A stretch of DNA of 64,000 bases, taken from Saccostrea echinata. Its lineage: Eukaryota. Of the stretch, positions 1 to 63,100 are shown in pieces. Positions within the stretch are counted from its first letter, which is position 1; each line of letters begins with the position of its first letter. A model generated the notes under the pieces. It saw only the letters and a program-made list of their open reading frames with translations, was not told the origin of the DNA and ran no database searches. The position numbers and the translations under genes are program-made. The stretch is taken from contig NW_026889772.1 of assembly GCF_033153115.1 (NCBI RefSeq), forward strand, positions 1,116,001 to 1,180,000. Reading direction: 5' to 3'.

Positions 1-98
1 CAAATCTAAAAGTGGACAGATCATTTGAAATCTTATGCATTCAAATCCAAAAGTGGACAAATTATTCTTACGTATTCAAATCCAAAAGTGGATGAGGC
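1..98 (-). repeat. Degenerate tandem copies (~40 bp) of the KLHDC10 exon-6 3' end and donor region
   Basis: CAAATCYAAAAGTGGA occurs at 1, ~42 and ~77; the last copy is the exon end (STFGFEY|GTAAGA). Confidence 0.65.
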
Positions 99-3000
99 TG
101 TTCCACCACCAAACACATACAGACGATTGTCATGGCTAGCCACCTCATGTCGATACCTGAAATAAAACACAAGTAGGTCCCCTTTAAACTTCCTTAAAAA
201 TTCATTTATCACTTATTTAAAACAATTTCATGGTCTCTAATTGGCAAAATTCAGTTTTGTTTTAAATGGCAGTGAATAAGTTACCATATTCAAATTTTAC
301 CAATAATAGTGTCTGAAAGTTTTTATTTTCTGTACAGTTACCTGCTCTCTGGAACAAAGTCTGACTGGGCAGGTAACTCCTCCCAGGTCAGTGACTGAAG
401 GTCAAGTCTGTGAATGTGAAGGTCATACGTGTACCCTGACGTCCCACCACACACGTACATGTGCTTGCCGATCTTTGTCAGTGTCTGTTGATTGAATATG
501 AGAGATTTAACATTTATACTGTACATTTGCTTGCTGATCTTTGAGCATGTTGAGAGAGTCTGTTGATTGAATATGAGATATTTAACATTATACTGTACGT
601 TTATAAATGTGCGCATGTAATTTACTGTTTTCACTGTAGTACATGTATATAACACTGAAGTAAACACTGTAAGGAACTTATCTTTGAAAATGAATAAATA
701 ATGTCAGGAAAAGAGGTATAAAATCTGAGAATTCAAAACATATTTTATAAGCATCATTTATTTTTTTAAATTAATCTGATTGAGTAGTCAGGCATTCCTT
801 GTTGATTTTCTATTTGCCAACATGACATTACACAGCATAAGAATACAAAGTGTGGGATAGGAAATTGACAAAGAAATTTATCCGGTGATGCATATCCACT
901 GTATAAAGGAGTGAAGACTATTAACCAATCTTCACCTGATATAAAATATACATGTAGATTTCTGACATCTGAGTGACACATGGACATTCTGAAGATTTTA
1001 AAGTGATAAACATTAAACTACAGTCTCCACAATATATCTAGATAATTGCCTTATATTCACATGACCATTATTTTTCTGTGTGATACTCACATGACCATTA
1101 TTTTTCTTTTTGATACTCACATGACCATATTTTCTGTGTGATACTCACATGACCATATTTTTCTGTGTGATACTCACATGACTGTATTTTTTCTGTGTGA
1201 TACTCACATGACCGTATTTTTTCTGTGTGATACTCACATGGCCATACTTTTTCTGTGTGATACTCATATGACTGTATTTTTTCTGTGCGATACTCACATA
1301 ACAAATTTTTCTGTGTGATACTCACATGACCGTATTTTTTCTGTGTGATACTCACATAACCATACTTTTTCTGTGCGATACTAACAAGACCGTATTTTTT
1401 CTGTGTGTTACTCACATGACTGTATTTTTTCTGTGTGATACTCACATGACTATTTTTTTCTGTGTGATATACTCACATGACCGTATTTTTTCTGTGGAGA
1501 TTCTCCTGCACACTTCATATGTCTCCACTTCAGTGTGTCCAGGTTACAAATGTTCAGCTGATTACTGCTGTTAGAACCAAAAGGAACCCCGGTCCCTCCA
1601 AAACACAAAAGGTTCCTCCCAGACCTCAGGACTGAAGTGAAAAAAAAACCTCATTCATCACACTGTCAGATATATTAAGTGTTTATACTTCAGATGTACA
1701 AGGAAACCTGTAAAAGAAACAGCTGTTGCCTCTGAATAACAGCGACATTTGTATAAACGATATTGAAGGACAGACCCAAAAAGAACAAGGAAATCACACG
1801 AGCTCAAAATTTCTTTTACAACAGTTTACATGTAATTGGCATGTTGATGACAATGCCTTAGGAAAAGTAAAAGAAAAACCTTCATATTTAAACATAATAC
1901 CTACCTGCATGTGATGCCAGCTCTATCGGCATGTTACCATCAGTTTCTAGTTTTGTCCATTCCCGTCTTGCAAAGTTAAACTTCCATAACTGTCGTATGA
2001 TATCAATAAAACTTAAACAACAAAGAATGCATAAACAGTGAGTATTTGGCAAAATGTGAGCTGTCTATATTTGTGATCTTGGCTTTTAGAAAATTGGGTC
2101 AATTTTCAGTGCATCTCTATTTTGCTTTGTGAATAATGTCACTGATACAATATATATTATACAAAAAATATGCAGAATTAGACGAAAGAAAATACAATTT
2201 CTTCTTCTGGATGCAACAATTTAAAAAAAATAAATTGATAAACTGATACAAATTAACTATGAAAAACAGCTGCATGATAGCTACTGTCTGAAATCCAGAT
2301 TTTTCACCCAAATTTTACCTCTTTGAACAGTGGGTAGTAGGTATCCTCTGTGTTTGGAACATTCAGGAACTTTGGGTTATAGCCTCCCAGTACATAAAGG
2401 TTACTGTCGTCTACCACGACTCGATGACCACTTCGTGGAAACAGAAAATCTGAAAATGGGTGTATAAAAAACAAATTATGATTCATACAAGTCAGAAATA
2501 AGCTTTCTGTTTAAAGAACAATATAACTGAGTAACAGGAAGGGAGAAAATATGTGACAAATCAGACCAGGATTTGAAACCCGGTCCAATAAACTCTAGAA
2601 GCTGAAATACCATATGAGCTAGACACTGGCTGACCTCGACTGTTGTACGTACAATGTGTATAGTTTCACACATTGACACATTCACAAATATAAAACTGAA
2701 ATATTAGTGCAAAAGTAAACTGGTAAACCAGCCCTTGCAGTTCATTTTGAGTTTGTGATCATGGTGATGCATGAATTCTTTTGTTCTCTTAAATAAAGTA
2801 AATACTCCGATACTTTAGGTAAGTAACACAAAATGCGGCTAACAAAGATCTTTAAACGCAATTAATTTTTTATCCTCCCCACCCCCCCCCCAACAAAACT
2901 TTCACCTATAATGTTTAAATTCATGTGTTTTGAGCAATGTCTTTTATTTTAATCAATCATGTTAAAAAGACTTAATTTATTTTTTAATATCATAAAAGAT

Positions 3001-4668
3001 ATTATAAAAGATATTATGATTTGTGAAAAAACCGTTATACTAAAAACAAAATAAAAAAGGATACACAGTGTTTATATATGTGTAGTTGGTATCCTGGAGG
3101 TTATACATGCATCAAATAAGTCAATGAATTACCTCTCTTTTTAAAAGGGTTTCCCCATTCACTGAAAATAATAATGAATCGAGAAAGTACAGAACGCCAG
3201 TGATTGATGCAAGAATCACTTAAATCAGAACCACAAACTGTTCTAGACATTGAGACCTAGGACAAAATGACCCAAGACAAAGTACTTGCCCAGCTCCAAT
3301 ACTGACTGGCCCTAAGCCATATATTTTATTCTTATTTTAGAAGATTATTCATATCAGCAAAATTCAAAACACATGTATTTTCATTTTTTTTTTTACCACA
3401 CAGAGACAGATATTGATATGAACAAATTTATTCACATAGATTGTGCCATCAAAAATCATAGATACTCCGTAAAAATGCACAACTTGCAATTAAAAATGTC
3501 AGGGTTTCTAATTTCATGTGTTTACAAAGATCTACTTTTATGTTGAACTTCCCTTTCTTCTCTTGGAACATAACATAAGTACAAGATTCTTTTCCTGGCC
3601 CTCAATGGCTTACTTTTACCCTTCCTCAGCTTAAGAAAAAAAGAAGGCATGAACCTGAAACTCATCGGACTTATATCTTGTGTAAGTGTTGATATATAAG
3701 CCATTCATTTATTTTTATTTTTAAAAACAATACATGCAATAGCCAAATAAAAATTAAAAAGTTGGCAATTGACCTCAATGATGCACATTTAAATCATCTG
3801 TAAATTATACACAGTGTAACGATGCTCTAGTCTAGGTTTTACTAGGAAGTATTTTCCTTTGTGTAATCCATACCGATCTGAATGGAGTCTAGTGTTAACC
3901 AGACAAGTATGTAAACTGTATTAGGACGGCACTCCAGGTGGCTTTCATTATCTCATGTCTCTCGTGGATAACTCAACATTCACTTCATTATTATAATAAT
4001 TTCTTGGCAATTTGAAAATACAGTAAAACACGGTTATAACAAAGTACCAGGGACGAACAGTTTTGCTTAGTTATAAGCGTAATTCATTATATCTGTTTTA
4101 AGCATGTTAAGTGTTCAATATATTTTAAAGTCAAGGGGAATGAAAATCACTTTGCTATATGCCTCAATTCATTATAAATGTGTTCGCTATAAGCATGTTT
4201 TACTTTACTTTGATCATGTTAATTGTACAAATTTTATATTATAATTACAACATCCTGTTAGTATTTTCAATACAGCTTGCCTGCATTATCAGCACCTGTT
4301 TGTAATATATACCAACATTATAAAAGTGCTCACAATACAGTGTTATCAGTCGGAAACTGTGAATAGATTGCATTCTTTTTACTTAAACTAGTTCCGTCAT
4401 GTTCGGGGAAAAGTCTGCCTAGGGCTGCTTTCTTAAACACACCTGCCGCGTCAAGTAATCCGTTACAACCGTGTACCGATTGCACAATCTGTCAGATCAG
4501 CTGTTATTCATCAAGTCGTTTCTCCTAACTGCAAGTTTGCAAAATCTCATTTTTGTTCTAATATAAAAAAGTATACATACCTAAATTGCTTCTGTCGATA
4601 TTTTCCGTAGCTTCGTCGTCTTGCTCTGGAGATCCAAATTTTTCTACGACCAGTCCCCTAACTGCCAT
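72..4668 (-). CDS. KLHDC10: Kelch domain-containing protein 10, exons 1-6 (3' part lies beyond the left window edge)
   Basis: Exons 4668-4581, 2449-2319, 1989-1905, 1631-1477, 484-342 and 156-72 all have GT-AG boundaries and consistent phases. They translate to MAVRGLVVEKFG...PRSGHRVVVDDSNLYVLGGYNP...YPLFKELWKFNF...MPIELASHA...FGGTGVPFG...YVCGGTSGY...RYRHEVASHDNRLYVFGGG, kelch repeats matching vertebrate KLHDC10 as I recall it. Exon 1 is the least certain. Confidence 0.92.
455..600 (-). repeat. Duplicated acceptor plus exon start of KLHDC10 exon 5 (2 copies)
   Basis: GTCTGTTGATTGAATATGAGA.ATTTAACATT at 483 and 558; the upstream copy encodes a decayed KISKQMY versus the real KIGKHMY. Confidence 0.8.
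1053..1498 (-). repeat. ~30-bp minisatellite made of the KLHDC10 exon-4 end plus 5' splice site (~15 copies)
   Basis: Minus-strand unit CACAGAAAAAATACGGTCAT|GTGAGTAT(CA); the first copy is the true exon end QKKYGH|GTGAGT. Confidence 0.95.
2529..2632 (-). mobile_element. Decayed tRNA-derived SINE-like element
   Basis: Minus strand has A-box-like TAGCTCATATGG and B-box-like GGTTTCAAATCC followed by a short body. Confidence 0.5.
4021..4206. mobile_element. Tc1/mariner (pogo-like) MITE
   Basis: TA|CAGTAAAACACGGTTATA ... TATAAGCATGTTTTACT(T)|TA: imperfect TIRs with TA flanks. Confidence 0.6.
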
Positions 4669-4884
4669 TTTCTAAGGGCGAATTTGTTTCTCAAAAACTG
4701 GTTTTAGTTTCGAACCAGTTTGGTTAACCGTTCATTTGTTCCTCAAACTGGTTTTAAACTAGTTTCAACCCAGAACCGGTTTTCCATTTGTTTTTGCTGT
4801 AACCGAAACCAGTTCCTTGAACCAACCAAACCACCTCCGATGGTGGTTTATTCGGTTTACGAAATAGCGGGAAGCTTTTCCAGC

Positions 4885-6585
4885 ATGGCGACAGCGTCTG
4901 CAATATTGCTGAAATGTGCTGTCTGCTCTTTTGAAACGGAAGTAATTCCGGAGTTTGAAAAACATTTTTGTAAGATAATTGATTCTGCATTTATTTGATT
5001 TGAATGTAACAAAAGGATTTTCTTGTTAATAAAACATCTTTCAGTTATAAAATCCAAAAAAACCAGCATTTGTATGGGATAGAGGAAATTCTAGTTACAG
5101 TATAACTGATGAACAGTAATATATACTTATAGTGATATGGTCTGTCAACAAATATATCTTTACGTTGACAATTTTCATTTACTGACAGAGAATTTTAGTT
5201 TTTAATGTTAAATTTCTGAACATTTCTCACAAAGATTCATTGATTTGAGCAGTATCATTTATATTTGCTTTACTATTATTATATACCTTTTTCATAGGCT
5301 CTACCAACAACAATGTAGTTCAAGTGAAAGAGTTGGTGTCAAAAAAATATCATACGTTAATTTCAGAAGAATTTCTTAACACATATGTGTTTGAAAATGA
5401 AACTGAAGCCAATAACTTTAGAGAGAAAGACCAAGGGAATGATGATAAGGCAGTTATGGTTTTCAACAAAACCAAACCAATTTACCCAAAAGTTAACGAA
5501 AATTTGTCTGTTTTTGGAAAAGAATTTGTACGAAATACAAAACCATGGGTGGTCAATCTCCTTACTGATTGGTGTAGATTCGACGAAGTTATATGCTGCA
5601 AATCTTCAAGATACTCTGAGGCCAATGAAAGCACTGAAACAACTGGTAAAAAATTTATGTCTCTAATTATATAATATATCTATATTTTTAATTCAAAGTG
5701 AAACATCATAAAATGCTGAGTTTGTACATTGTATATTTACCCATTTATGTCAAGCCCCTGATAATATTTGCTATCCCCATGCTTGAATACTACTTAATAT
5801 GCTTTGAACAGAATATGTACATAATATACCAGTCATGATTTTTTTCCAAATTATTTGCAGATGAAAGTAAAACAGATGTACCAAGTACCAGCAATAATTC
5901 ATTATGGTCTGATATACCAAGTACCAGCAATAATTCATCAAGTACCAGCAATAATTCATCAAGTACCAGCAATAGTACCAGCAATAATTCATCAAGAACC
6001 AGCAATAATTCATCAAGTACCAGCAATATTTCATCATGGTCTAAAGTTGCAACCAGTCATCTAATAGAATTACACACCATGCATTCTGCCAAATTCACAA
6101 AACCCTCTATGAAAAAGAAGGAAGTTTGGAAGATAATTTGTTCTGAAATGCACAACAGGGGTTTCTCTTTCACAGTGAATCAATGTGAACAGAAATGGAA
6201 AAATCTTACAAAAGCATATAGAGATTGCGTTGATCACAACTCAAAATCAGGCAATGAACGGAAAGAATGTCCATTTTATAAAGAACTAGAAGACTGTTAT
6301 GGGTATAAACCGAATGTTAAACCCGTATTCACTCTAGGAACACGCAAGGAGGATGAAACCGATAACGAAGAATCAAAGGCAGAGTCAACTTCAAGTGACT
6401 GTGATGTGACCCCCAAAAGAAAGAAGAGTAAGCAGGCAAGTGAAATAGTAGAAATCTTGGATGACATGAGAAAAGAACACAAGGAGATGATGAAGACACT
6501 GAAGGAACAACATCAGAAGAAAATGGAAAATGAAGAAAAAAAACTTGAAATAATGGCTCAGTTGGTTGAAGCCATGAAAAAATAG
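4885..6585 (+). CDS. Harbinger Myb/SANT-like (trihelix) DNA-binding protein, 3 exons, ~385 aa
   Basis: Exons 4885-4969, 5298-5645 and 5861-6585, two phase-1 GT-AG introns, open throughout. N-terminal CxxC-x12-HxC, then a Ser/Thr/Asn repeat linker, a W..W..QCEQKWKNL..Y..CPFYKEL Myb_DNA-bind_4-type domain and a C-terminal coiled coil. Confidence 0.88.
5878..6040 (+). repeat. 21-bp coding repeat (STSNNSS) in the Myb-like protein linker
   Basis: CAAGTACCAGCAATAATTCAT repeated ~7 times, in frame. Confidence 0.9.
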
Positions 6586-7715
6586 TAACAGTAGTAACTA
6601 TTATGTTATCTTTTAGTGTAAGAAAGATTACTTAATGGTAATTTCTGGCAAGTTAGCGGACTGGTTTGTAGTTGACAGGAGAATCTGATACGACCATTAG
6701 TCAATTTTTCATGCCTTGTTATTATCAGATAAGATTATTTCATTGTTGATGAAAGTTCCTATTGTGGTATATTAAGTAAAGACTTAAGTAAGTTTTTAGT
6801 ATCAAGTTTGTCTGGTCTTGGCTGTTGTCACTGTTGACTTTCTTTTGATTTAAATATTTATTATCTTCTGTAGAACCCAGATGATTATCATAAATAAAGC
6901 TTTTTTCTTAAATTTGAAAATGAAAAGTATGGAGACTATTTTTAAAAAGTTTTAAATATTTGAAAATTGTTTTGTTCTTCAAGGAGAAATAATTCTTTGG
7001 CCTTTAATTCCACTGTTTGATGCATGTATTTTATAAGGCTTTAGAGAATAGATAAATAATTTGAATTTGTTCATAATAGTGGTCAGAAATCAAAATATTA
7101 AAAGTTTTCTCTTCAAAAATGAGTTTTGGTTAATTTGGTTATTAGTTTTAGAATCATTAGAAAAATAGTTAACATGTATTGTAAGGTAAATTATTAAACA
7201 TACTGTAAAGTTGGTTTGAATAATGGAAATCTAAAGTACATTTACCTGTGTGGACCTATGATAATCCAATTGTTTTAAATTATTACAATGTGATTACTAG
7301 TAGTCATCCATTCATAAATCATGATGTATACAGTATACATGTATCAGAATGTTTTGTAAAATTATTTATATAAGCCCTTGAGTATAATAGAAGGGGAGCA
7401 CTAGCTTCAAGACCGCATTATTTTGAGGAAGGTATCCTCTGTCTTTGATTTATTTTTGTGTTACAATAAAATTTAATATACCTGAGTTTTTATCTTTCCA
7501 CTGTGTTGAAAAAAAAAAATTCAGAATTTGATCATTGATGAATATTTGATGCATTAATATAAATACTTCATTTTAAGTAAGATTAACAATGAACAAATAA
7601 ACTTTTTTTGGATTCTTTATTAAGAAAGGAGTTTCAGTTTCTCATGCATGTGTAATTTAGATATGTTTTTCTGTTCATAACAAGGTGCCTACGTTGTATA
7701 TGAACAGGAAAAATA

Positions 7716-8860
7716 TTATAACATTCTTGCAATACTATCCCTCTTTTCTCCTGCAGCATTATTTACACATAAAATTTGCACAAAGTTGTTGACTTCATCC
7801 TCTCCTCCCTCCTCTATATACTCTACACAATCATCGTCATGCTGTAGACAAAATTCGTGCAATACACAGCAACTGATCACTACTTTTACAATTTTTTCAA
7901 TGTCCTGAATGTCTACAAATTTTAAGCGGCGAAATCTTCCTTTTATGGCCCCAAAAGTGCGTTCAATTACCATCCTAGTACTGCTGTGAATATAGTTGTA
8001 CTGATACTGACTTTGTGTTAGGTTTCCACGGTCCCTGTAGGGAGTCATCATCCACATTTCAAGACCATAAGCAGAGTCCCCCAAAAGGTGTGTATTGTTG
8101 GGAAACATCCCCTCTGGGTCTTTCTGAATCCTTTGGTACAATTCTGAATTTTTAAAAACTCGGGAGTCATGCACAGATCCCGGCCAACCACAGTTAACAT
8201 CTAATAAATGCATTTTTGAATCACACACGGCCTGAAGAATGACAGACGGAAATGACTTTCGATTAATGTAGTTTTCTGGACAATGATTTGGAGTTTTTAT
8301 AGGTATGTGACTACCGTCAATGGCACCAATTACAGCAGGGAAATTTTTTAAATCTTTAAACCCTTTAACAATGTTGGAAACTTTTTCACCATCTGGCCAT
8401 TTTATGCATTGCTGCAGAAGTTCACGGCAAACAATGTTTGCGAGGCGCTTTACAATATCAAAGACTGTATATTCACATACTCCGAATTGGTCAGCAATAG
8501 CTTGGATTGTCATTTGTGTTGTCAAATAGCGTATGAAAATTAATAACTGTTTTTCCATTGGTATAATTGTTTTCTCTTTAAATTCTAAGAAAATTGTTAA
8601 AAGAGATGAAAATGTTCCTGGGCTCATTCGAAACCTTCGTCTAAAAACTTTGGAATGATCTCCTCAACATAGTTAAGCGCTCGAGGAATTCTGATCCGAC
8701 GCTGAGGAATCAGGGTCATAAGAGCAGAACACATTGAAGTATGCATTTGGAGTTGAGACAATAGACCAACTTCATGATCTTCTAAGTTGCTATCATTTTC
8801 TAAAAATGCAGAATTAATAATCATGCAAACACAGGCATGTTTGTGCCTTTTAGACGCCAT
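7716..8860 (-). CDS. Harbinger (HARBI1-like, DDE_Tnp_4) transposase, frameshifted near 8625
   Basis: Catalytic motifs IGAIDGSHIPI, GSVHDSRVF, LLGDSAY and RMVIERTFG are intact in ORF 8627-7716. The N-terminal part (MASKRHK...YVEEIIPKFLDEGF) is in another frame and joins at the conserved FRMS motif. Confidence 0.93.
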
Positions 8861-8988
8861 CTTTATGTCTAAACTGTTCATTTGTTTTACCGAGGCAAAC
8901 CGGATTGAAACTAGAAACCAGTTTGAAAACTAGTTTCAAACTATAAACCAAAACCTGAACCAGTTTAAGCGCAACAAATTCGCCCTAA

Positions 8989-9400
8989 GTTTTTTTCTGT
9001 CATTGAAAACGTTCATCTGACCGTGATTCAATAACTGTTAAGATTTTATATTATCACTTTGCTGATTGGTTCATCTTTCCAAGTATGTCCAATCAAAAAG
9101 ATCGTATCTAATTGGACTCGGTATAAAGTACAAAATGGAGAATTTTGTAAACAATAAACGAATTTCAAGTTGCAGTGTAATGTATTGTAATTTACTCCTG
9201 AATTTTCCAATATTGATTTTTTTTGTCATCTTTCTCGAGAGATGACACATTAAGTTTGTAACCCCGGATATGAAGCCCCAGTGTAAGCTGCCATTGATAA
9301 GCTGGTGGTCTGGCAAATGACACGATTTCTAAATATAGATATGTAAACAAAACTGCTCAAAGACGAGGAATGGGCGATCTGTCAAACAGGCCATCTTAAA
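8989..9400 (-). promoter_or_regulatory. Probable native KLHDC10 5' UTR/promoter, displaced by the Harbinger insertion
   Basis: Directly continues the empty-site sequence; three CCAAT/ATTGG boxes at ~9064-9115 and a YY1-like GCCATCTT near 9391. Positional inference only. Confidence 0.4.
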
Positions 9401-9460
9401 AAAGAAAAACTACACATAAATCATAGAGAGTCAAAGAGACAATATCGCTTGGGTAGTGGT

Positions 9461-9705
9461 GGGTCTTCAAAATACATGCAGTTATCTAATCATGGTCAGC
9501 GCGTTGTGTATAAGAATGCACTAAACATGGCATCGATTAGAACGGCCAAGGCGTGGATCAAAGTATTTACAGAAAAACAAAGCGGGGGGTCTTCAAATAA
9601 CTTGCAGTTATCTAGGCTGTTACGTAAATGATGGCCAGTGCGTGTGTTACATGGCATCGATTAGATCAGCCAAGGCGTGGATCTAAGAATTTACAGAAAA
9701 ACAAA
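9461..9705. repeat. Imperfect ~124-bp tandem duplication
   Basis: GGGTCTTCAAA..TGCAGTTATCTA and ACATGGCATCGATTAG..GCCAAGGCGTGGATC each occur twice, ~124 bp apart. Confidence 0.8.
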
Positions 9706-10318
9706 ATCAAAGTAAATACTCGCATTAAAAGTTTAAATACGACTGATGTGAATTGATGTCGAAAATTTCACCTTTATGTGTATCTTAGTCATTCAATAAC
9801 CTGATGCCATTTTTAATTTTTTTTTTAAACAAATAGTTAATGTTAAAACTACAGGCATTGGAAGAAAGATTATATAATCATTGTGAATTTTTACGCATGT
9901 CTGCACTATTCTTTGTTTTTTGTTCTGTAAAAAGTAAATGTCAGAAATACAATATTGTTACCTTTGTATAAAAGACGGAATTTCTTTACCCGACTCGTAT
10001 TTTGAGAATTTATAATTATAGCATCTGCAATCATTTTCTTTGTGTAATTTTAAATTGCATTATTGGTTAGTGTCAAAAAAGCTATCAAATCACTTCTGTT
10101 ATACTTGAAATATTATTTAAATTGATTGTTTCCTTGAACAGCCTAAATATCAGGGTTGGTAAATTGGTACTCTTTCAGATAATTTGTAAATGCCTAATTT
10201 TAGCTTATACCGTGTTAATTTTATTACTGACCTATATTTAAATGCATGTGAGGGTTATTTCTTTGGATAAACCATATATTTAAAAGTGGAAAATCTTTCG
10301 AAATCAATTGAGGGTCAT

Positions 10319-11136
10319 TGTCGTATAGTGAGACTTCCCCATAGTGAGATTTCCCCGGAAGACTGGCTATGTAGTGAGATATACCCCGGGAAGACTGGCT
10401 ATATAGTGAGACTTCCCCCCGGAAGATCGACTGGCAATAGAGTGAGACTTCTCCCGGGGAAGTCTCACTATATAGCCAGTCTCTCCCCCTTTCATAGTGA
10501 GACTTCCCCTCAAATGTAGTTTCCGGAATATTTATTTCATTGTAAAACAATATTTTTCAGTATATGAATAAAAGTTCTCCGTTAATTAATAATTAAAACA
10601 TCTTAATAACCTTTTAACAGTTTGTTAGCCAAAAATAATTATGGGATGACATGTACATGTATATTGATGTGAGATAACTGAATGAAAAATGTACGTTATT
10701 GTTACAAGTATACATCTTTCTTTACTATATTGTATTTATTGCATTCCCCATGAAGGTTAACATAAGCAAATTCCAAGAGTCCTCGAGTAATGATCTCTTA
10801 AATGTTAAATGTATTTCTTTTGATAAGAATCATTTTGGAACAATGCAATTATTTACTGTGCACGATAAATTTTTAATGCGCACTTCTATATTTATTCATA
10901 CATGTATCTACTTTATAAGATCATTATCAAAATGCAAGTATATATACATCGTCGATGTAAATAAAATACAACTGAACATGGAAGTGGGAAGCCTCACTAT
11001 GGTCGTTTAGGGGGGAAGACTCACTATATAGTAATTCTCCCCCCCCCCCCCACCGGGGAGTCTTACCGCTATATATAGCCGCATTTCCGGGGGGAAGTCT
11101 CACTATGGGGGTGGGAGTCTCACTATATGACACCGG
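10319..11136. mobile_element. Non-autonomous DNA transposon with reiterated subterminal TATAGTGAGACTTCCCC motifs
   Basis: Left TGTCGTATAGTGAGACT versus right AGTCTCACTATATGACA; multiple motif copies in opposite orientation at each end, AT-rich core. Confidence 0.7.
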
Positions 11137-11561
11137 ACTAATTCAAGTTAGCGCTTTAAACTTCTTGGCTGTTGTCTGAGTAAGCTGCTGTGATGTAAAG
11201 TCAATAGGAACGCTAAGGTTTTACCCATCCTCTTGTATAACAATTGTTTACAAATTTTACGAATACTGCTCAGTGGTTACATTTTTTAAACACATATACA
11301 AAAAATATTTGAAATTACTGTTGGAAATGTTTACTGAAAGGCAGCTTGCCTCTACCTTCCCCATTTTTTTTGTTGCAGCATATTCATACTCCCCCCTTCC
11401 CCCCCCCCCCCCCAATGTGTTTTCGAGAGAGTCAAAAAGTTTAAATCTTCCCTCCCATCCACGAAAAAGAATTTCGAGTTTGAACACCCTCTTTTTTTCC
11501 TAGTGAAAGATTATTCAGGTAGGTTGAAATTTTTTTTCTGACTACCCCCCCCTTTTTTTTG

Positions 11562-11789
11562 AAAAAAAAGTTCTTCTGCTTGTAATCGCTGAGGAAAAAA
11601 AATGTTACATTCCACTGTTTATTCTGTGCCCCCTTCCCCCCTTTTGAAAAAAAGTTCTTCTGTCTGTAATAGCTGAGGAAAAAATGTTGCATTCCACTGT
11701 TTATTCTGTCCCCCCCCCCTTTTGAAAAAAAAGTTCTTCTGTCTGTAATAGCTGAGGAAAAAATGTTACATTCCACTGTTTATTCTGTG
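11562..11789. repeat. ~75-80-bp tandem repeat, 3 copies
   Basis: GAAAAAAAGTTCTTCTG..TGTAAT.GCTGAGGAAAAAATGTT.CATTCCACTGTTTATTCTGT x3. Confidence 0.85.
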
Positions 11790-36600: not shown

Positions 36601-38084
36601 GGAGTATCTTACTATGGGTATGTTTTGAGAGTGTTCCTTTAAGGGTAGGTTATGAGAGTGTCCTGCCTAGGAAAGGTTTTGAGAGGAGATCTTTACCAGT
36701 ACTGTAGTTTGTTATAAGTGTCCTTCTCATTTTTTTATATCAGGGAACCGGAGCCACCCGGCCTCTACCAAACCCCAGTTTTCAGAGGGAGACCCTCGCC
36801 TTAAATATGTCATGAAAAAACTGGATCCCAGAATTCACTTTGCTCTCGTGTGCGGAGCAGTGGTATGTAGATTTCTATTAAATGGGTACAATGTATAGGT
36901 ATTGGCAGTTGATTTCACTCATTGAAGTTTGGATAAGGAAAAATTTATATCTTATAGAAGCAGTTATCCATTAGCAACAAATGTTAACATTCTTATATTG
37001 CAAAACTATCTTCTTATTTGTAAGTACATGATGTGTACATAATAAATACTTATTCTGCAGTCCTGTCCAGCCATCAATGTGTACACTGCAGAAAACTTAG
37101 ATAAGGCTTTGGACCAGGCCACACGGAATTTCTGTAAACAGGAGGTGTCCATGTTCACAGAGGTGGATGAAGTCTGGCTCTCCAAGATCTTCCTGTGGTA
37201 TCGCGATGACTTTGGGGGAAACAGTGTTTCAGTTATTGAGTAAGCAGTTTATAATCTATTAAACAGTAGTATGAACTTATATTTGGAAATTATCTCATTT
37301 AAATCAGATTCATTCTATTTATATGTAGCACAATTTCCAAAACAAATATGTAAAAGGAACTTCATAAGTCATGATGTTGATGCTGAATTCCAAAGTTCAT
37401 CACAGGATTCATTTCACATTCACTATTCACTCAGGATCATATTCATGAAAAGGGGTGAAGATAAGGCCAATATATAAAATACCTTTGTTTACCCTAACGC
37501 GACCGACCCAATTAAATCCTGCCAACTGAAAAGTTTTTTTCGAATTAGATTATTCAAATAATTTTTTTTAATATTAACAAGTTTTTAATATTTTTACAAG
37601 TTCAATTGAATAATAATTGTGAATTAATTTACCTTGAAGTTTGCTTAAAAACGGCATTGGTAATGGTGAGATAATTCTGTTAAATCGTTTTCTTTGTACT
37701 TTTCTTATTTTTAAAGGTTATATTCCATTATATATAAATTTATATATTTTTATATTGATTAAAAGTTGCTGTCAGAAAAAAAATTATCGACCTACCTACC
37801 TACCCAACTTGAGATTTTAGGGTCAGGTTAAGGGAAACAATGATATTTTTAATGATGGCCTAATGAACAGTGTGAATTATGAACTCAATCACGTTGAAAT
37901 TAATTTAATTTTAATTCTTTTGATTTGTTATTTTAGATGGATTATGCCATATCTTGAGAAAGACATTCAGGACAGAGCTGTAGTCCTTCTATTTAAAATT
38001 AAAAATGTAGGTCAGGTGGACATTAAGTACAATGAGTATGATTGGCGGCTTAACAAGCTGGGAGTCACGCCTCTCATTCTGTGA
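27642..38084 (+). CDS. DUF547 domain-containing protein, 6 exons, 288 aa
   Basis: Exons 27642-27754, 28786-28940, 33679-33831, 36744-36862, 37061-37239 and 37937-38084 (867 nt, phases consistent). Family motifs AFFINLYNALTIHG, SLDDIEHGILRGN, DPRIHFALVCGAVSCP, LSKIFLWYRDDFG, YDWRLN. Confidence 0.93.
28143..28273. mobile_element. 131-bp near-perfect palindromic MITE with 5-bp TSD
   Basis: TCGAT|CCACAAGGGCTTGCTCCCGGCGTGTAAT...ATTACACGCCGGGAGCAAGCCCCTGTGG|TTGAT. Confidence 0.9.
29255..31277 (+). repeat. 43-bp minisatellite, ~47 copies
   Basis: Unit AGACCACAACATAACAGCTAGTGTAAGTGTAGGGGTTTTATAG; roughly a single monomer at the paralogous site 21893-21953. Confidence 0.97.
31763..32023. mobile_element. 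Short MITE with G/C homopolymer subtermini
   Basis: CATGGCTGTAGGAA ... TTCCTACAGGCTTG imperfect TIR. Confidence 0.55.
33763..33915 (+). repeat. 76-bp exon-3 end plus donor duplication, 2 copies
   Basis: Donors after 33831 and 33907. Confidence 0.95.
34432..36724. repeat. 27-bp minisatellite, ~80 copies, decaying up to the exon-4 acceptor
   Basis: Unit CTCACCAAGTGTAGGTTATGAGAGTGT with variant blocks repeated at higher order. Confidence 0.97.
37465..37860. mobile_element. Tourist-like (PIF/Harbinger) MITE
   Basis: TAA|GGCCAAT..AAAATA..TTGTTT.CCCT ... AGGGAAACAA..TATTTTT..ATGGCC|TAA. Confidence 0.75.
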
Positions 38085-38153
38085 TGGACAGCTATAAGAC
38101 ACACCCACCTTCTGTGATGGACAGCTGTAAGACATGCCCACCTTTTGTGATGA
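38077..38153 (+). repeat. 33-bp tandem repeat beginning at the DUF547 stop codon (~2.3 copies)
   Basis: TTCTGTGATGGACAGCT.TAAGACA..CCCACC repeated. Confidence 0.85.
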
Positions 38154-38506
38154 CTGGTATAGAGATAATCATGTGCAGTCCTTTACACATGTACCAACAC
38201 AGGGATGAAAAGGTTTCAACCTATCATATATGCAACCTATCATATGTAAAGCACCATTTTGAATTCTGTTATGTACTTCATAGATTCTAAATTTTATAAT
38301 AAGCAGTAAAGTTATATCATACATGTACATTTAGAGTGCCATATTTATGGAGAATGTTAGATATTTTTGCTTGTCCATCATTCTACCTGTAATTCAACAT
38401 TCACCTTGTCCCCCATCATGTTTACCAGCAGTAATATAGTCAGAACTGTCATTATTCAGGTATTTTAATTCCAATGAACTGAATTTCAACTTTCATTTAG
38501 AGGCTA

Positions 38507-38509
<3 letters not shown>

Positions 38510-38553
<44 letters not shown>
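38510..38553. repeat. (CT)n(AT)n compound microsatellite
   Basis: Direct reading. Confidence 0.9.
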
Positions 38554-38554
<1 letters not shown>

Positions 38555-39277: not shown

Positions 39278-39371
39278 ATATATATACATGTATATATTAG
39301 TGGAACTGATCCCCATCCTTTAGTCTGTTTTTTTTATAATCAAGTTTGAAGATCTTCAGTGCATTACTTAA

Positions 39372-40307
39372 GGACGTTCGATCCTGAGCTTTTGAGCAGA
39401 TTTTGGTCTGGAGCTTTATTTCTAAAATTCTGCATTATTTTTAAGTTCTAACATTAAATCTGGATTCTACAATGCAAATTATGCTATATCCAATGAAAAA
39501 AACGCGATTAAATTCCATTCAAATAGGATTAAGCCAGGAACTATATTTTGTGGCGGAAGATTTTTTAGAAGAAAATGATCATTTTTTCCCTTTTGAAATA
39601 CATACAGTACTGTTAAGTTTAGATTCCTATTTTTCCATGCTGGTTGCACACAGAGCTATTTTGTGCATTGAAATGTTTAATGCTGGTTCTAAAATATTAA
39701 TTAAATCAGTTTTTGTGAATTCTATCATCATATTGTGACAAATATAGAAAATATATTCTGAAACTCCAGGAAAAAATTGAGCCAATTTTATCACAAAATT
39801 AACAGTTTTTTAGTAATATCTAAAAAATAACATCATAGACCTCCACTTTTGATTTTCTTTTCTGAATATATAAGATAACTCTGATCAATCTACTTAAATT
39901 CAGCAAAAGTTTAAGACTTTAAAATATTTTTCTTGCTTGTTATATTTTTAATGCCTGAAAAATGACATTTTGTGAGTGCAGAAAGGTCAAATAATTGATT
40001 ATGCGAAGCAATTTGAAAATTTTTCTTTGTCACAATTTTAATGTGTCTTTTTTAAGAGAGAATAATAGCATACTTTGTCCCATGATTTATTTGGATAAAA
40101 AATATTGGAGGGAAAACGTCGAAGATGTTATTTTTGATTAAGACACAAATTCAGTGCAAAAAGGTCATTTTAAATGTACTGTAGCGCCAAAAGAAGCATA
40201 TTGACCCCCATTTTTTGTTTTGATTTTTAATTAAGCTATGTGTGTACAAACTAAAAATATACTTGACAAAAAAAGTTTAAGACTTTAAATATCAAGATCC
40301 AACGTCG
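39372..40307. mobile_element. Kolobok-like non-autonomous element
   Basis: TTAA|GGACGTTCGATCCTGA ... TCAAGATCCAACGTCG|TTAA. Confidence 0.75.
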
Positions 40308-43300: not shown

Positions 43301-43515
43301 ATAACAGAAATAATTCTTAACAAAAACAAATAACATTAAATGCATGCAAGCAATAATTACAATATAAAGTTGAAAATATATGCGAAAAGTGTTTAATAAT
43401 GCACTTCTAAGAGTTTGTAATTTGTTTGAAAAAATAATCAAAATAACATGGTGAATGACGTTTCACTGAATTTATTCACCTTGTATCATTATGTACTGAC
43501 TAATTATATAAGTAG

Positions 43516-43673
43516 CAGGGTTGTCCTTAAGACCTGGGGGCTGGGGAATTTCCCTGCCTTTAATGACATAATCCCCGGTTATTCTCCCTTCATTCCCTGT
43601 TAGGGGAGACACCCCAGACCCCCTTCTACTTTTTTAAAGTCCCCTGCTATTTCAATTCTTAGGGACAACCCTA
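43516..43673. mobile_element. Short hAT-like MITE with 6-bp TSD
   Basis: AAGTAG|CAGGGTTGTCCTTAAGA ... TCTTAGGGACAACCCTA|AAGTAG. Confidence 0.8.
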
Positions 43674-43808
43674 AAGTAGTAAAGAAAGTTTATCATATAT
43701 TGATTTTGTTAAATTATAAATTATTTTAATTCTTTTTAAATTGTTTATCTGAGAGATGAAGGATATATCTTTTTTAATAAATATATGAGGACACTCAATT
43801 AAGTTACT

Positions 43809-43932
43809 GACTTTATGATAACTGAGCTATGTGGATCACTGCATCTTTGCCTTTATAGTGAATTGCCAGGGACTTTATGATAACTGAGTTATGTGGATCA
43901 GTGCATCTTTGCCTTTATAGTGAATTGCCAGG
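43809..43932. repeat. 62-bp tandem duplication
   Basis: GACTTTATGATAACTGAG...GTGAATTGCCAGG x2. Confidence 0.92.
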
Positions 43933-44963
43933 AACATCTCTATACCCATTACATTTCTAGTTAATATTTTGCAATAATGTATATCCACATTTGCTGTAAA
44001 CATCGCTGCCTGTCTTGTGGCATCATTCTCCTGTGATATTTTTTTCTACGCCGTAACGCTTCTAGTGTCTCTGTATATCATTCGTCCCTTCTATAATTAT
44101 AAATTACGATTATTTTTATATACATTTCTAGATTGCTCTATATTTATATAATTCTGATAGCTTAGAATTTTGGCTTAATGGTTTTCTTACACAATATAAT
44201 GTATCTAATAAAGATTGCAAAATGTGTATATTACACAATAAAGACATTATAAATCAAAGCATTGAGTTGATCTTCAGTCTATATACAATCTACCTGTAAT
44301 CGCTAGCAAACTTGACAAATGACAGAGCACTGTACACCTCTTGTGTGCCAAGTCTTATTGAAATCTGAGCAAAACTGGGGGGGAGTAGTGTTTTTGAAAA
44401 ATTATTTACAGATAGACAGACACCTTACCAATGAATTAAGCTCTTCTTTAACTAGTGATCTAAAAAGGAGCCAAAACGGATTTTGTTTAGGAAACAAAAG
44501 GCAGACATTAAAGCTGACATGCAGGACTTAAGGATTCTATAGAGGAAAAATAAATCTAATTGTACAATATGACTCCAAACAAAAAGAGAAAAGGCAATCT
44601 GTTGTACAACCATGAAATCTTGTTTTCACCTCTGTGGCCAATGCCAGAATAAGGATTAACACATTTAACATGTCATATTTTGAATACTTTAACAGAAAGT
44701 TGTTCTGATAAACACTGAAGATGATGTTTTGTGGAGTGTTGTATAAGAATAATATATCACAGTCACTGAAACATGGAACTGATATAAACATCTGTACATA
44801 CATGAATGTTATTATTAAAAGTAATTTATTCTGAAAGAAAGACTTGTGATAAACAGGACATGCACCTATCCAGTCATAACAGCTAAACACAGATGATTAA
44901 ATGTAGAAATCAGACACATGGATGAACCACTGGTTGGTTTATATACATTTTACAGACATGTCC

Positions 44964-47149
44964 TCAGACAGAAATGCTCCCCTCTCTGAAGTTGGTCTTC
45001 CCGATGAGGATGTTGACTAGGATGCTATTTCCTTCTCTGTTCAGTTTAATCGTCTCCTTTAAGATCTCGCGGATCTTGTCTTCATTACTTCTGTCCAGCT
45101 TCAGTCCCATGCCTCCATAACCAATGGCAACCTTTTCATAGTCTGTGAACTAAAAATAAACACAGAATTTTTTTTATTAATCAAATTCTAATTTTCTATG
45201 TGAAAAGAGCCTAAAGACAATTTAATACATCCAATTTGATGTAGTGTATTCTTTAATAAGGTGTTTACTGTGGTATTTTTTCGGGGGGGGGGGGGGGGGG
45301 GGGTATTAATTTAGTGATTGAGTAAAAACTTTGGATTTTCTTGCAATGACAATACCATTAAACATTCTGCAATTCCTTAATTTAAACATTAGATAATGAT
45401 TGAATTTCACACATTCACTTGAAAAGGAAACCAAGAGATGAGCTGACCACAATGTGTATGCCCTGGTCTTGCTGACTGATGTATAATTTTTGAATCTAAA
45501 CATTATACTTCTAATGTGGTATGATGCATGCATCAAAATTAATTTTGACAAACTATAAACAATTCTCTATAAGATTTTTTCCAACATACTAGATCTCCTT
45601 AAGAAACCTTAGACATTATTAACTCATCTATTGTAAACATAGTAAAAATAAAAATAAAAGTAAAAATATAGAGAGGGGGCTCACATTTCTTTCTTATCTA
45701 TGGTGTTATTTACTTACTGCTAATTTACAGGCCACACTGCTATGGTGTCGTTTACTTACTGCTAATTTACAGGCCACACTGCTATGGTGTTATTTACTTA
45801 CTGCTAATTTACAGGCCACACTGCTATGGTGTCGTTTACTTACTGCTAATTTACAGGCCACACTGCTATGGTGTTATTTACTTACTGCTAATTTACAAGC
45901 CACACTGCTATGGTGTCGTTTACTACTGCTAATTTACAGGCTATGATGTCATGATTTCGTTTACTTACTGCTAATTTACAAGCCACACTGCTATGGTCTC
46001 GTTTACTTACTGCTAATTTACAAGCCACACTGCTATGGTCTCGTTTACTTACTGCTAATGTACAGGCCACACTGCTATGGTGTTATTTACTTACTGCTAA
46101 TTTACAGGCCACACTGCTATGGTGTCGTTTACTACTGCTAATTTACAGGCTATGATGTCATGATTTCGTTTACTTACTGCTAATTTACAAGCCACACTGC
46201 TATGGTCTTGTTTACTTACTGCTAATTTACAGGCCACACTGCTATGGTCTCAATTACTTACTGCTAATTTACAAGCCACACTGCTATGGTCTCGTTTACT
46301 TACTGCTAATTTACAGGCCACACTGCTATGGTCTCGTTTACTTACTGCTAATTTACAGGCCACACTGCTATGGTCTTGTTTACTTACTGCTAATTTACAG
46401 GCCACACTGCTACCAAACATAGGAACTTGTTCTCTCTCAATCTGTGTCCACCCAGCATCATTGCCAACCAATGCCATCACAGGTATCTATGAAAGTAACC
46501 AATGAAGGTGTAAAAATATATTAAATGGTCAACATTATTCTTTGTAAGATATGAACCCATATACATGTAACCAAACTGAGTAAATCCATGTGCATGTGTG
46601 TGGCAATATTATTCATTCATCATTTTATTATGCAATAAAATAGCTGTTCAGTTTGTTTTAAAATGAAAAAAAAAATTCGTTGTTTATTATCAAATCTACA
46701 CACATACCAGTGATACAAGTAGTTAAATCATATAATAACATGATTGGATGAGATTTACTTACAAGTATATGTAAAATAAGTCTAGAATTTGTAAATCAAA
46801 CCTTGTGCCTGGTGAAGGTATCAAACTCTGCGATGCTGTAACCAAGGGAACCGTCGCCATAGATAATCCACACATCAGAGTCAGGGCGACATAGCTTAGC
46901 TCCCAGGGCGAATCCTCCCCCAACCCCCAGGGTACCAAATGCTCCAGGGTCTAACCAGTGGAGGGGGGCACGGGGTCTGGTGAGAGACAACAGGATATCA
47001 GTTATAGGATACAGTATTAGGCAGATCAAATGTAACAACAGGTCAATGGGCCACTATGCTCCCCTGAATCATATTCATGTACTGGAATATATCAGTATAA
47101 AAGAGAATTTGTATTTATTGCCTAAAATTCATTCTGACCATTTTTTAGA

Positions 47150-47189
<40 letters not shown>

Positions 47190-48071
47190 CGTTGTCCATC
47201 GTCCGTCCATCTGTCTGTCCGTCCGTCCGTCTGTAAACTTTTCACATTTCCAAATTCTTCTCAAGAACCACTGTGCCAATTTTAACCAAACTTGGTACAA
47301 AGTATCCTTGGGTGAAGGGGAGTTTAAATTGTTAAAATTAAGGGCCAAATCCCCTTACAGGGGGAGATAATCAAGAAAAGACAAAAATAAGGTGGGGTCA
47401 TTAAAAAATCTTCTTCTCAAGAACCACTGGGCCAAAAAAGCTGAAACTTATGTGGAAGCATCCTGTGATAGTGTAGATTTTAAATTGTTAAATCATGACC
47501 CCTGGGGGTAAGGCGGGGCCACAATAGGGAATCCAAGTTTTACATTGAAATAAATGGGAAAAATCTTTAAAAATCTTCTTCTCAAGAACCACTGGGCCAG
47601 AAAAGCTTAAACTTATGTGGAAGCATCCTTGGGTAGTGGAGATTTTAAATTGTTCAAATCATGACCCCCGGGGGTAGGGCGGGGCCACAATAGAAAATCC
47701 AAATTTTACATTGAAATAAATGGGAAAAATCTTTAAAAAACTTCTTCTCAAGAACCACTGAGCAACAAAAGCTTAAACTTATGTGGAAGCATCCTGGGGT
47801 AGTGTAGATTCTAAATTGTAAAAATCATGACTTCCGGGGGTAGGGCGGGGCCACAATAGAAAATCCAAATTTTACATTGAAATAAATGGGAAAAATCTTT
47901 AAAAATCTTCTTCTCAAGAACCACAAGGCCAGAAAAGATGAAATTTATGTGGAAGCATCCTGGGATAGTGTAGATTTTAAATTGTAAAAATCATGACCCC
48001 CTGGGGTAGGGCGGGGCCACAATAAGTATTACAATGGGGAAATCTGGTAAAGAACAGCATGGCCAAAGTTA

Positions 48072-48107
<36 letters not shown>

Positions 48108-60100: not shown

Positions 60101-63100
60101 CACTTATTTTCCTGGCCCAGCAGTGACTATAGATACTCAGTTTACTGGTAGTTTGATGTCACTTATTTATCTAGCCCAGCAGTGCTTATAAATATTCAGT
60201 TTACAGGTAGTTTGATGTCACTTATTTACCTTATAGATACTCAGTTTACTGGTAGTTTAATGTCACTTATTTACCTGGTCCAGCAGTGACTATAGATACT
60301 CAGTTTAGTTTGTTGTCACTTATTTACCTAACCCAGCAGTGACTATAGATACTCAGTTTAGTTTGATGTCACTTATTTACCTAGCCCAGCAGTGACTATA
60401 GATACTCAGTTAAGTTTGATGTCACTTATTTACCTAACCCAGCAGTGACTATAGATACTCAGATTAGTTTGATGTCACTTATTTACCTAACCCAGCAGTG
60501 ACTATAGATACTCAGATTAGTTTGATGTCACTTATTTACCTAACCCAGCAGTGACTATAGATTCTCAGTTTAGTTTGATGTCACTTATTTACCTAACCCA
60601 GCAGTGACTATAGATTCTCAGTTTAGTTTGATGTCACTTATTTACCTAACCCAGCAGTGACTATAGATACTCAGATTAGTTTGATGTCACTTATTTACCT
60701 AGCCCAGCAGTGACTATAGATACTCAGTTTAGTTTGATGTCACTTATTTACCTAGCCCAGCAGTGACTATAGATACTCGGTTTACTGGTAGTTTGATGTC
60801 ACTTATTAACCTAGCCCAGCAGTGACTATAGATACTCAGTTTAGTTTGATGTCACTTATTTACCTGGTCCAGCAGTGACTATAGATACTCAGTTTAGTTT
60901 GATGTCACTTATTTACCTAGCCCAGCAGTGACTATAGATACTCAGTTTAGTTTGATGTCACTTATTTACCTAGCCCAGCAGTGACTATAGATACTCAGTT
61001 TAGTTTGATGTCACTTATTTACCTAGCCCAGCAGTGACTATAGATACTCAGTTTACTGGTAATTTGATATCACTTATTTACCTAGCCCAGCAGTGACTAT
61101 AAATACTCAGTTTACTGGTAGTTTGATGTCACTTGTTTACCTGGTCCAGCAGTGACTATAGATACTCAGTTTACTGGTAATTTGATATCACTTATTTACC
61201 TGGTCCAGCAGTGACCGCTGCCACACCAATCGTCCCTGACATCCTGGCTACAGCATCTGCTGCAAAAACTGTAGTCACCTGACAACAATTCAATACAAAT
61301 AATCATTTTAGTAATGAAAAGCATTAATCAATTTTAACCTGGTGTATATGGAATGTAAATCAATTATTCAAAACTATCAATGATGCCATTACTAATTTGT
61401 TATAACAATTTCAGGATGCTGTAAATTTTTTTAAAAGACCAATTAATCATCTGTTTTGAGAATTATATTACAGTGATTTATGTTAAACTTTATTCAAATT
61501 ATATTGAACTAAGGCCAAATTTATATGATAGCCATTATAATAATATTTAACAACATCTTTCATACAAGTATTTTTTCATTAAGTGTTTACAAAAGGAAAA
61601 CTATCAAAAATGTTCTCTTCTTATAAGCTATGAAATGTATAGTGGACATTTTTTCATGGCCATTGGCACAACTTCACTGATTTTATGACTAAATTCATAC
61701 CTCATGTCTTGTGTCTACAACTCTTATCCCAAGCTTTTCACAAGCTACGAGTATAGGGGATATATGTCCTCCTACGAGGGTAAACACATACTTCACTCCG
61801 TGTGCCTACAAACCAAATCAAACAGTGTATAATTCTGACATTTTTATATTCGGTTTATGTCCTCATGGATGAAAAAATGGATAAGAATGATTAAAGATTC
61901 CAAAATGTGTTCTATGCAAAAACTGCAAAATAAACCAGTTATTTTAAAATCCAATACTGTATCAACTCTGATTTCTTACACCTAAAAACTAAGTGCACAT
62001 GTAGTTCTGAAGCAGCTGACTTTAATTTATAACTAAAATAAACACGGAAGACTTGATAATTCTCTGTATTTTCCTCCAAACTTTTTCACTCTTCAATACA
62101 GAAAAAGTGAAATTATCTGCAGCTAGAGTTAAAAGATATATCCCAAATTCTATTGTTGATTTAACTGCAGTAAAGTTTACATATTTCTGAGTGAAAATTC
62201 TTGATGAGATATTAAACTTTAACCAAATTACTGTTTAATTCTATGCTCAAGGGAACTATTTGTGTGTATACTCCAGTTGATCCAAACTTTACAGAACTAT
62301 AATCAATTAAACTGAATCATTTGGGATTAAAATCATTGTTAATTATAAATCTTAGACATGAAAAGTTAAAAAATTATTATTTGTAATATTGTAGATTGCA
62401 AGGATATGAGACACTAATGGGGCTATAACAAGAAAGAAACATTATGAAGGACATGACCAGGATGGGAGCCTGTGGCCCCAAACTCTTTACAAAGTGCTTC
62501 AATAACTGAGGTATCTAATTCTTACTAGGGCTGTGTGTTGAGCAAAAAATTTTGATACGATATAATATGATATTTTATAAAGTGATATGCAATATATTGG
62601 ATACCTTAACAAGTCTATCAAAAAACTCTTGTAAATCATTTTATTTTAATGCATAAAATTTTTTGAAAAATGAGTGTTTTAAAAACAATTTCAAAGTTCT
62701 TGTCTTGCTGTCATTATAAAATACGCTTCAAATTCAACTTTTTAATGACTATAAAACCAACATGTTTAAAAAAAAATATCTATGCATTTTATAATAATTA
62801 TTTAAGATGTCATATCTCCTTAATGTTTATATCATTATTGATCTGTTTTAATTCAAAACAGTCAAATATAATCTTTGGTGATTGAAATTCCTAACTTTTT
62901 CACAGAATTATAAGAAAAACCGCCAGCCCGATACATATTGGAAGTTATTTCTTCGATACGATACATTCTTGAATATTGATATACATGTATAATCGATATA
63001 CATTGATACAACCCTAATTCTTACCATGGACTGACAGGAAACCTGTCAATAAGCCGGCCACCATGTACACCAAGATCAAGAGTTTTATCTATTAAATTTA

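Follow-up and report, generated by a model that had tools for sequence, protein, structure and literature searches.

Seven introns in a 64,000-nt window of the Saccostrea echinata genome (G000:C23:1116001-1180000; assembly of 923 Mb in 425 contigs) start with tandem copies of a unit that joins the end of the preceding exon to its 5' splice site. These introns follow exons 4 and 6 of KLHDC10, a Kelch gene, exon 3 of a DUF547 gene in both of its duplicated copies, A and B, and exons 4, 13, and 15 of an ILVBL-like gene. The structures are boundary-spanning minisatellites: they form intronic head-to-tail arrays of ~10-100-bp units, the first unit holds the authentic exon end and 5' splice site, and the donor is reiterated in the units downstream. 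In the window, the donor arrays start 16-66 nt inside the exon, have periods of 30, 42, 52, 53-59, and 76 bp with 2 to ~100 copies as scored by Tandem Repeats Finder (TRF), and carry an intact GT donor in most copies. The same boundary anchoring is seen directly in the sequence at two acceptors (KLHDC10 exon 5 and DUF547 exon 2) and one stop codon. A previous sequence-only reading of the window had proposed arrays at six donors as well as these acceptor and stop forms, and all of them are present; the count of donors rises to seven with the DUF547 duplicate. As that reading also held, the arrays are independent in origin because their units are unrelated to each other.

The exon ends against which the arrays are read were set independently of the arrays, by orthologue mapping, Pfam searches with the exons taken one by one, a structure match for KLHDC10, and spliced RNA contigs. 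The ILVBL-like gene occupies 44.9-63.5 kb of the minus strand and comprises 16 exons, as mapped with the full-length orthologues P0051, P0063, and P0067; it is a thiamine-pyrophosphate enzyme gene of the 2-hydroxyacyl-CoA-lyase/ILVBL kind. The ends of its exons 4, 13, and 15 were placed by tblastn with the full-length orthologues. For exon 4, the orthologue alignment stops at ..TAGPG and picks up in the next exon at 54057. For exons 13 and 15, the junctions 46976|49351 and 45149|46388, both GT..AG on the minus strand, were read from spliced contigs of ~2.2 kb (four runs, three studies). KLHDC10 lies on the minus strand below ~4.7 kb. The best solved relative of its exon at 1453-1650 is PDB entry 9d8p, "Kelch domain-containing protein 10" (E=3e-16), the alignment with which pairs the exon 4 end YGH with YGQ, and the remaining exons, including the open reading frames (ORFs) at 36-212 and 341-703, give Kelch matches in Pfam. 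The DUF547 gene lies on the plus strand, and its exon 3 matches the Pfam DUF547 family over positions 16-66. Exons 1-3 and their introns are segmentally duplicated as copy A (~17.1-23.7 kb) and copy B (~27.5-34.1 kb; 27500-34150), with a spacing of ~10.4 kb and an identity of 79-94%. Exons 4-6, at 36.7-38.1 kb, are reached from copy B only and are absent from copy A.

The three arrays of the ILVBL-like gene, all on the minus strand, are fixed by TRF and orthologues, with RNA in addition for exons 13 and 15. The exon 15 array (45698..46412) comprises 17 copies of a 42-bp unit; the exon extends 25 nt into the array, to its end at 46388, and the first donor reads GCA|GTAAGT. The exon 13 array (48785..49393) comprises 11.7 copies of a 52-bp unit, with the exon end at 49351, 43 nt inside the array, and the first donor CAG|GTTAGT. 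The exon 4 array (54351..61215; TRF intervals 54351-55434 and 57014-61215) is composed of ~100 units of 53, 59, or 45 bp. Its exon ends at 61200 (..TAGPG) with the first donor CAG|GTAAAT, and a 59-nt unit made of 16 nt of exon and 43 nt of intron is repeated directly after the exon end. Three quarters of the 7.1-kb intron 4 is array. The array is interrupted at 55435-57013 by a foreign insert of ~1.6 kb, which is flanked by inverted (CGAAA)n and (GTTTC)n tracts and resembles a foldback-type element.

The KLHDC10 exon 4 array (1053..1496, minus strand; TRF, Pfam Kelch, and PDB 9d8p) contains 15 copies of a 30-bp unit, and the exon ends at 1477 (..KKYGH) with the first donor CAT|GTGAGT. In copy A of the DUF547 gene, the exon 3 array (23158..23461, plus strand; TRF and Pfam) contains four copies of a 76-bp unit composed of 66 nt of exon and 10 nt of intron, with the exon end at 23225 and the donor GAG|GTGAGT. 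Copy B holds the same 76-bp unit twice (33764..33915, plus strand; TRF), with the exon end at 33831. The sequence-only reading had thus found a real array but had described it as a single one, whereas it occurs twice through the segmental duplication of exons 1-3. The KLHDC10 exon 6 array (1..92, minus strand) is not in the TRF output and is evident by direct reading of the sequence, with the Kelch Pfam match as its other support: at least 2.5 copies of a unit of ~38 nt, composed of 21 nt of exon and GTAAGAATAATTTG, run off the start of the window, with the exon end at 72 and GT at 71-70.

At KLHDC10 exon 5 (459..598, minus strand; sequence and the Kelch Pfam match to ORF 341-703), the intron end and exon start are present in two copies of 74 and 66 nt, and the true exon start, 484, lies in the second copy. 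At DUF547 copy A exon 2 (21336..21480, plus strand; sequence and ORFs), two degenerate copies of the exon start, with a unit of ~50 nt, lie upstream of the acceptor. The stop array of the last DUF547 exon (38077..38152, plus strand; TRF and sequence) consists of 2.3 copies of a 33-bp unit and starts 5 nt ahead of the stop codon (TGA, 38082-38084); the unit has no donor.

In addition to the arrays described here, boundary-spanning minisatellites have been described for human F7, IFI6 (6-16), CBS, LMNB2, and PDGF (PMC1557585), so that the earlier statement that no named system was known does not hold. In F7 intron 7, the first monomer of a 37-bp variable number tandem repeat spans the exon-intron boundary, and the authentic donor is followed by identical pseudo-donors, of which only the most upstream functional donor is used, a 5'-to-3' rule (Borensztajn et al. 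2006, PMC1557585). Similar to F7, the first, exon-proximal donor is the one joined to the next exon in the RNA contigs at ILVBL-like exons 13 and 15, again in four runs from three studies. The main differences are that F7 is a single mammalian locus with ~5-8 copies, whereas the arrays here have up to ~100 copies, occur several to a gene, and are in genome-wide excess. IFI6 (6-16) intron 2, CBS intron 13, LMNB2, and PDGF intron 4 have 10-26 units, of which the first spans the boundary, and the donor is reiterated; in IFI6 and CBS, two pseudo-sites beside the authentic donor are used as well (PMC1557585). Unlike in IFI6 and CBS, use of pseudo-sites is not among the joints listed here. The IFI6, CBS, LMNB2, and PDGF cases are treated as isolated curiosities. 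The full-text literature searched yielded human single-gene cases only, with no genome-wide enrichment and no acceptor- or stop-anchored counterparts. What is new here is the pervasiveness of the arrays, which occur several to a gene and make up roughly 40% of the genic minisatellites close to exons, the presence of acceptor- and stop-anchored forms beside the donor-anchored ones, and the invertebrate setting.

Two further systems are reminiscent of these arrays. When introns are gained through tandem duplication of an exon segment that contains AGGT, as outlined for potato RdRp (PMC4974935), the duplication also doubles the splice signals and splicing hides the extra copy. Both breakpoints are exonic in such cases, and a new intron results, located between the duplicated AGGT motifs. 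The arrays here differ from intron gain in that one breakpoint falls within an intron already present and none is created: the units include the beginning of that intron, and every array is followed by unique intron sequence. The tandem splice sites GYNGYN and NAGNAG (PMC2423196) likewise place several candidate splice sites in a row, but these are spaced by a few nucleotides inside a single motif and serve as alternatives, compared with a spacing of 28-76 nt in repeated units here.

Comparison with chance shows that junction anchoring is overrepresented in the window. The GC content of the window is 30-40%, and the sequence is rich in minisatellites as judged by TRF. With ~29 donors and ~15 minisatellites, ~0.5 donor-anchored arrays are expected by chance, compared with 5 distinct ones in the TRF list (Poisson P=1.4e-4). 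The proposal that junctions seed most of the minisatellites stands as regards the excess but does not extend to the two largest DUF547 arrays, which were checked for hidden junction anchoring and are purely intronic by TRF and sequence. One of them, 47 copies of a 43-bp unit (29242..31278, plus strand), starts ~290 nt past the copy B exon 2 donor and is present in copy B only; the other, 82 copies of a 27-bp unit (34450..36662, plus strand), ends 50-80 nt before the exon 4 acceptor at 36743. An ACTT-rich array at 12905-13050 was also set aside, because KLHDC10, the first recognisable exons of which are found below ~4.7 kb, does not extend to it.

Because the window had been picked for looking odd, an independent sample was drawn from the rest of the genome. 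The whole assembly was searched with four Pfam models (Myosin_head, Kinesin, Aldedh, and SNF2-rel_dom), and the best exon matches were taken with 1.5 kb on either side, giving 86 loci and 226 kb of non-redundant sequence on other contigs. The loci were turned to the gene strand before TRF, which returned 76 distinct arrays, and donor anchoring was called by inspecting the first unit and the upstream reading frame. Among the ~28 minisatellites compared, 12 are donor-anchored, 2 are acceptor-anchored, and ~14, with period 20-100 and at least 2.5 copies, are not anchored; the sample also holds five long-period satellites that resemble transposable elements. In a binomial test that allows a generous 70-nt target per donor, the probability of at least 12 anchored arrays among 27 is 1.3e-4 if exons number 2 per kb and 9e-8 if they number 1 per kb. 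The consensus units of 11 arrays contain a strong 5' splice-site motif in the sense orientation, compared with 1 array in the antisense orientation (p=0.006). The excess over chance that the sequence-only reading had proposed is thus borne out in the window and in the sample.

The donor-anchored arrays of the sample resemble those of the window. L022 has 13.8 copies of a 31-bp unit after ..YELPPHI, with the donor GTGAGT, and its hidden Markov model match from the genome-wide search stops exactly at this donor. L025, L027, and L028 share an array of 28-38 copies of 34 bp (..SNPIME, then GTAAAA). L033 carries two arrays, 2.8 copies of 62 bp (..IGVLDIYG, then GTAGGT) and 10 copies of 44 bp (..DEECK, then GTAAGT). 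In kinesin genes, L041 has 5.8 copies of 54 bp (..HPSKGFY, then GTATGT), and L055, in a coiled-coil exon past the kinesin motor, has 3.6 copies of 74 bp (..EAEQK, then GTGTAAGT). In ALDH genes, L061 has 5.2 copies of 28 bp (..TAQGPQ, then GTAGG), L062/L070 is one array scored as 1.9 copies of 82 bp or 2.0 copies of 117 bp (..FLTQGQ, then GTAAGT), and L066 has 5.2 copies of 47 bp that begin at the stop codon and hold CAG followed by GTAAGT in the unit. L086 has 11.6 copies of 45 bp in an SNF2 gene (..KNKELLVG, then GTAAGT). L023 (G000:C9:8087701-8090886) is one myosin gene with three junction arrays in 3.2 kb: an acceptor array of ~11 units of ~55 nt, ending ..TTGTAG followed by GCTGTAAAC, lies before one exon, and donor arrays of 3.4 copies of 55 bp (..ADQTLLQ, then GTACTA) and 3.7 copies of 67 bp (..FVIHHYAGK, then GTAAGA) lie after the next two. 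The other acceptor-anchored array, in L024, has 2.8 copies of 58 bp. For L025, both arrays of L033, L041, L061, L062, and L023, Pfam identifies the frame up to the first donor as the expected domain segment.

Several candidates were inspected and found not to be anchored, namely the arrays of L006 and L065, the 42-bp array of L007, and the 44-bp array of L028. A 30-bp array in L007 matches its exon end at 14 of 17 positions; it was rated as possible and was not counted. The sample contains near-identical locus pairs (L024/L025, L027/L028, L039/L040, L074/L075, L083/L084, and L089/L090), the members of which are on separate contigs or at a large distance from each other (C5 vs C36, C19 vs C41, C16 vs C6, and 35 kb vs 7.4 Mb on C25). 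Such pairs represent either haplotypes that were not collapsed or duplications of very recent date.

That the arrays are a product of assembly or are borne by transposons, and hence are not a property of the genes, is scarcely credible. Long arrays are hard to assemble, and other arrays in the window, the 166-168-bp satellites, do resemble transposable elements. However, the units are unrelated to each other and are colinear and continuous with their own exons, and a self-BLAST of the window finds only the segmental duplicate. Short unspliced RNA contigs from independent runs also lie inside the 52-bp array (X2, 49167-49327) and the 42-bp array (X4, 46310-46381; X9, 46061-46132), and such arrays recur at many loci on other contigs.

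The downstream donors are largely intact. GT is kept in 14/15 copies of the KLHDC10 exon 4 array, and in 4/4, 15/17, and ~88/~105 copies of other window arrays; a good donor is kept in 12/15, 15/17, and ~80/100 copies. Nevertheless, conservation of the nine donor columns does not exceed that of the other columns of the units and ranks lowest in several arrays, so that distal donors show no sign of selection and the decoy copies look like neutral passengers. An alternative in which the arrays are kept for function, as spare donors, as clustered U1 binding sites that boost splicing or suppress premature polyadenylation, or as in-frame isoform units, draws on the retention of good donors, on the three unit lengths that are multiples of three (30, 42, and 54 nt), and on human F7, in which splicing is restored by the following pseudo-site if the first donor carries a mutation (PMC1557585). 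It is improbable given the donor columns, the unit lengths, most of which are not multiples of three, and a copy number that is free to vary between duplicated copies. In addition, no distal-donor joint at ILVBL-like exons 13 and 15 is among the joints listed, from contigs that hide rare isoforms. The suggestion that the arrays give each exon a bank of alternative donors is therefore not supported at these two exons, at which the first donor is the only one seen among the joints listed.

The arrays are dynamic and still changing, as copy number differs between duplicated copies: the 76-bp array has 4 copies in one DUF547 duplicate and 2 in the other, and the 44-bp array has ~4 copies in L027 and ~14 in L028 of the same assembly. 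The placement of the unit is also variable. The share of exon in a unit ranges from ~5 to 87%, with the donor at no fixed place, so that the GT is not the anchor of the process. Seeding driven by GC content was considered and finds weak support, since unit GC is ~37% in anchored arrays (36-37%) compared with an intron background of 33% and is equal in anchored and unanchored arrays.

The explanation that we favor for the excess at exon edges, at an even chance, combines a raised birth rate of duplications with a filter of selection. A short tandem duplication of 28-76 bp would arise between two breakpoints, one in the last 4-66 nt of the exon and a second in the intron, at a distance of a few to ~40 nt from its start, and would then be multiplied by ordinary slippage or unequal exchange. 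The spliceosome would take the first, exon-proximal donor, leaving the mRNA unchanged, and the later copies would be intronic passengers that drift neutrally. The birth rate of tandem duplications would be locally higher at exon edges, as a regional effect of the exon-intron transition that is not tied to the GT, and asymmetric purifying selection would let donor-side and stop-side duplications pass while removing exon-internal and most acceptor-side ones. Selection explains the direction of this asymmetry, as the first copy stays functional in a duplication that spans a donor or a stop codon but not in one inside an exon or in most that span an acceptor. It does not by itself account for the 4- to 9-fold excess over the intron interior, in agreement with the earlier view that selection explains tolerance but not excess. 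A further reading, in which exon edges are birth hot spots for 30-80-bp tandem duplications through a chromatin-, replication-, or transcription-linked process at the exon-intron transition, falls a little short of an even chance; junction-derived arrays would then account for ~40% of the genic minisatellites close to exons and would be carried by a few percent of all splice donors.

One could instead do without any mutational bias: duplication would be uniform, and arrays that abut constrained sequence would last longer, since deletions are lethal on one side, and would be easier to recognise. The presence of anchoring at all types of constraint edge, whether donor, acceptor, or stop, is consistent with this, as are some unanchored arrays that also lie near exons (L007 at +25, L028 at +53, and L065 at -30). 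Starts 7-70 nt past a donor should, however, be almost equally protected, and they are about six-fold rarer than starts within the exon: counted by eye, ~18 arrays start inside the exon, compared with ~3 within 70 nt after the donor. The shelter from deletion that the neighbouring exon gives to an array is therefore insufficient as an explanation. One-sided protection would also be expected to give a two- to few-fold effect, compared with the 4- to 9-fold excess seen. We consider persistence of this kind quite unlikely to be the whole account.

Coupling to transcription or splicing, the cause proposed in the sequence-only reading, would take the form of a process specific to donors and is rather unlikely as well. 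According to this alternative, pausing of RNA polymerase II, R-loops, or engagement of the U1 small nuclear ribonucleoprotein at the 5' splice site would lead to breaks or fork stalling there, the repair of which duplicates the donor. Donors do prevail over acceptors (sample, 12 vs 2; window, 7 vs 2), the units nearly always contain the donor instead of starting just past it, and the genes of the window are expressed, at least the ILVBL-like one. On the other hand, the asymmetry between donors and acceptors is expected from selection alone, and the position of the donor in the unit is not fixed. Multi-copy acceptor-anchored arrays such as that of L023, with its ~11 copies, and the stop-codon array at 38077-38152, with its donor-less unit, argue against a strictly donor- or U1-specific trigger. 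The acceptor- and stop-anchored arrays point to a general effect of exon edges, or of constraint edges, that is filtered by selection.

Several points weigh against a raised birth rate at exon edges. The anatomy, first-donor use, excess, and unconserved decoys are observed, and the raised birth rate and its cause are inferred. The central, unbiased exons alone show a weak excess, with 2-3 anchored of ~66 compared with ~0.6 expected. The sample is small and centred on exons, the exon density of its flanks is bounded rather than annotated, and anchoring at flanking exons was judged by eye and Pfam and not by a blind pipeline. Donor use was checked by RNA for 2 of the 7 window arrays, with contigs, which hide rare isoforms. 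The GC content of the units, only slightly above background, offers no obvious sequence driver.

The birth of minisatellites is poorly understood, and their repeated origin at one definable kind of site provides many independent events to study. If the proposal is true, hot spots at exon edges would be a way in which minisatellites originate and introns grow that has no genome-wide description in the literature found. The arrays inflate introns, as in ILVBL-like intron 4, and the dozens of intact pseudo-donors behind real ones allow the rules of 5' splice-site choice to be studied in a natural setting, as F7 did in mammals. They will also mislead gene predictors and short-read mapping. If the genome-wide excess of junction-anchored arrays is mutational, it points to a measurable link between exon-intron architecture and local genome instability.

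The remaining features of the window lie outside the junction arrays. Between the genes, a 315-aa ORF at 7719-8663 on the minus strand matches DDE_Tnp_4 (E=1.7e-38) and encodes a PIF/Harbinger-type transposase. It is adjoined by a Myb/SANT ORF of 248 aa at 5839-6582 on the plus strand, which contains a 21-bp coding repeat at 5918-6036, and together the two ORFs form the two-ORF arrangement of PIF/Harbinger elements. A 154-aa open frame at 23795-24256 on the plus strand, in the intron or spacer that follows exon 3 of DUF547 copy A, has an internal repeat of ~70 aa and no Pfam match. The 166-168-bp satellite occurs at 15996-16768 and 47404-48024, in opposite orientations and in introns or spacers; RNA contigs on it reach depths of up to ~170,000, indicating an abundant family that is transcribed at some place in the genome. 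Elsewhere in the assembly, G000:C8:11294606-11321368 contains five intronless AMP-binding ORFs in tandem with a spacing of ~5.9 kb, four of which have identical scores and which therefore constitute a very recent tandem gene array.

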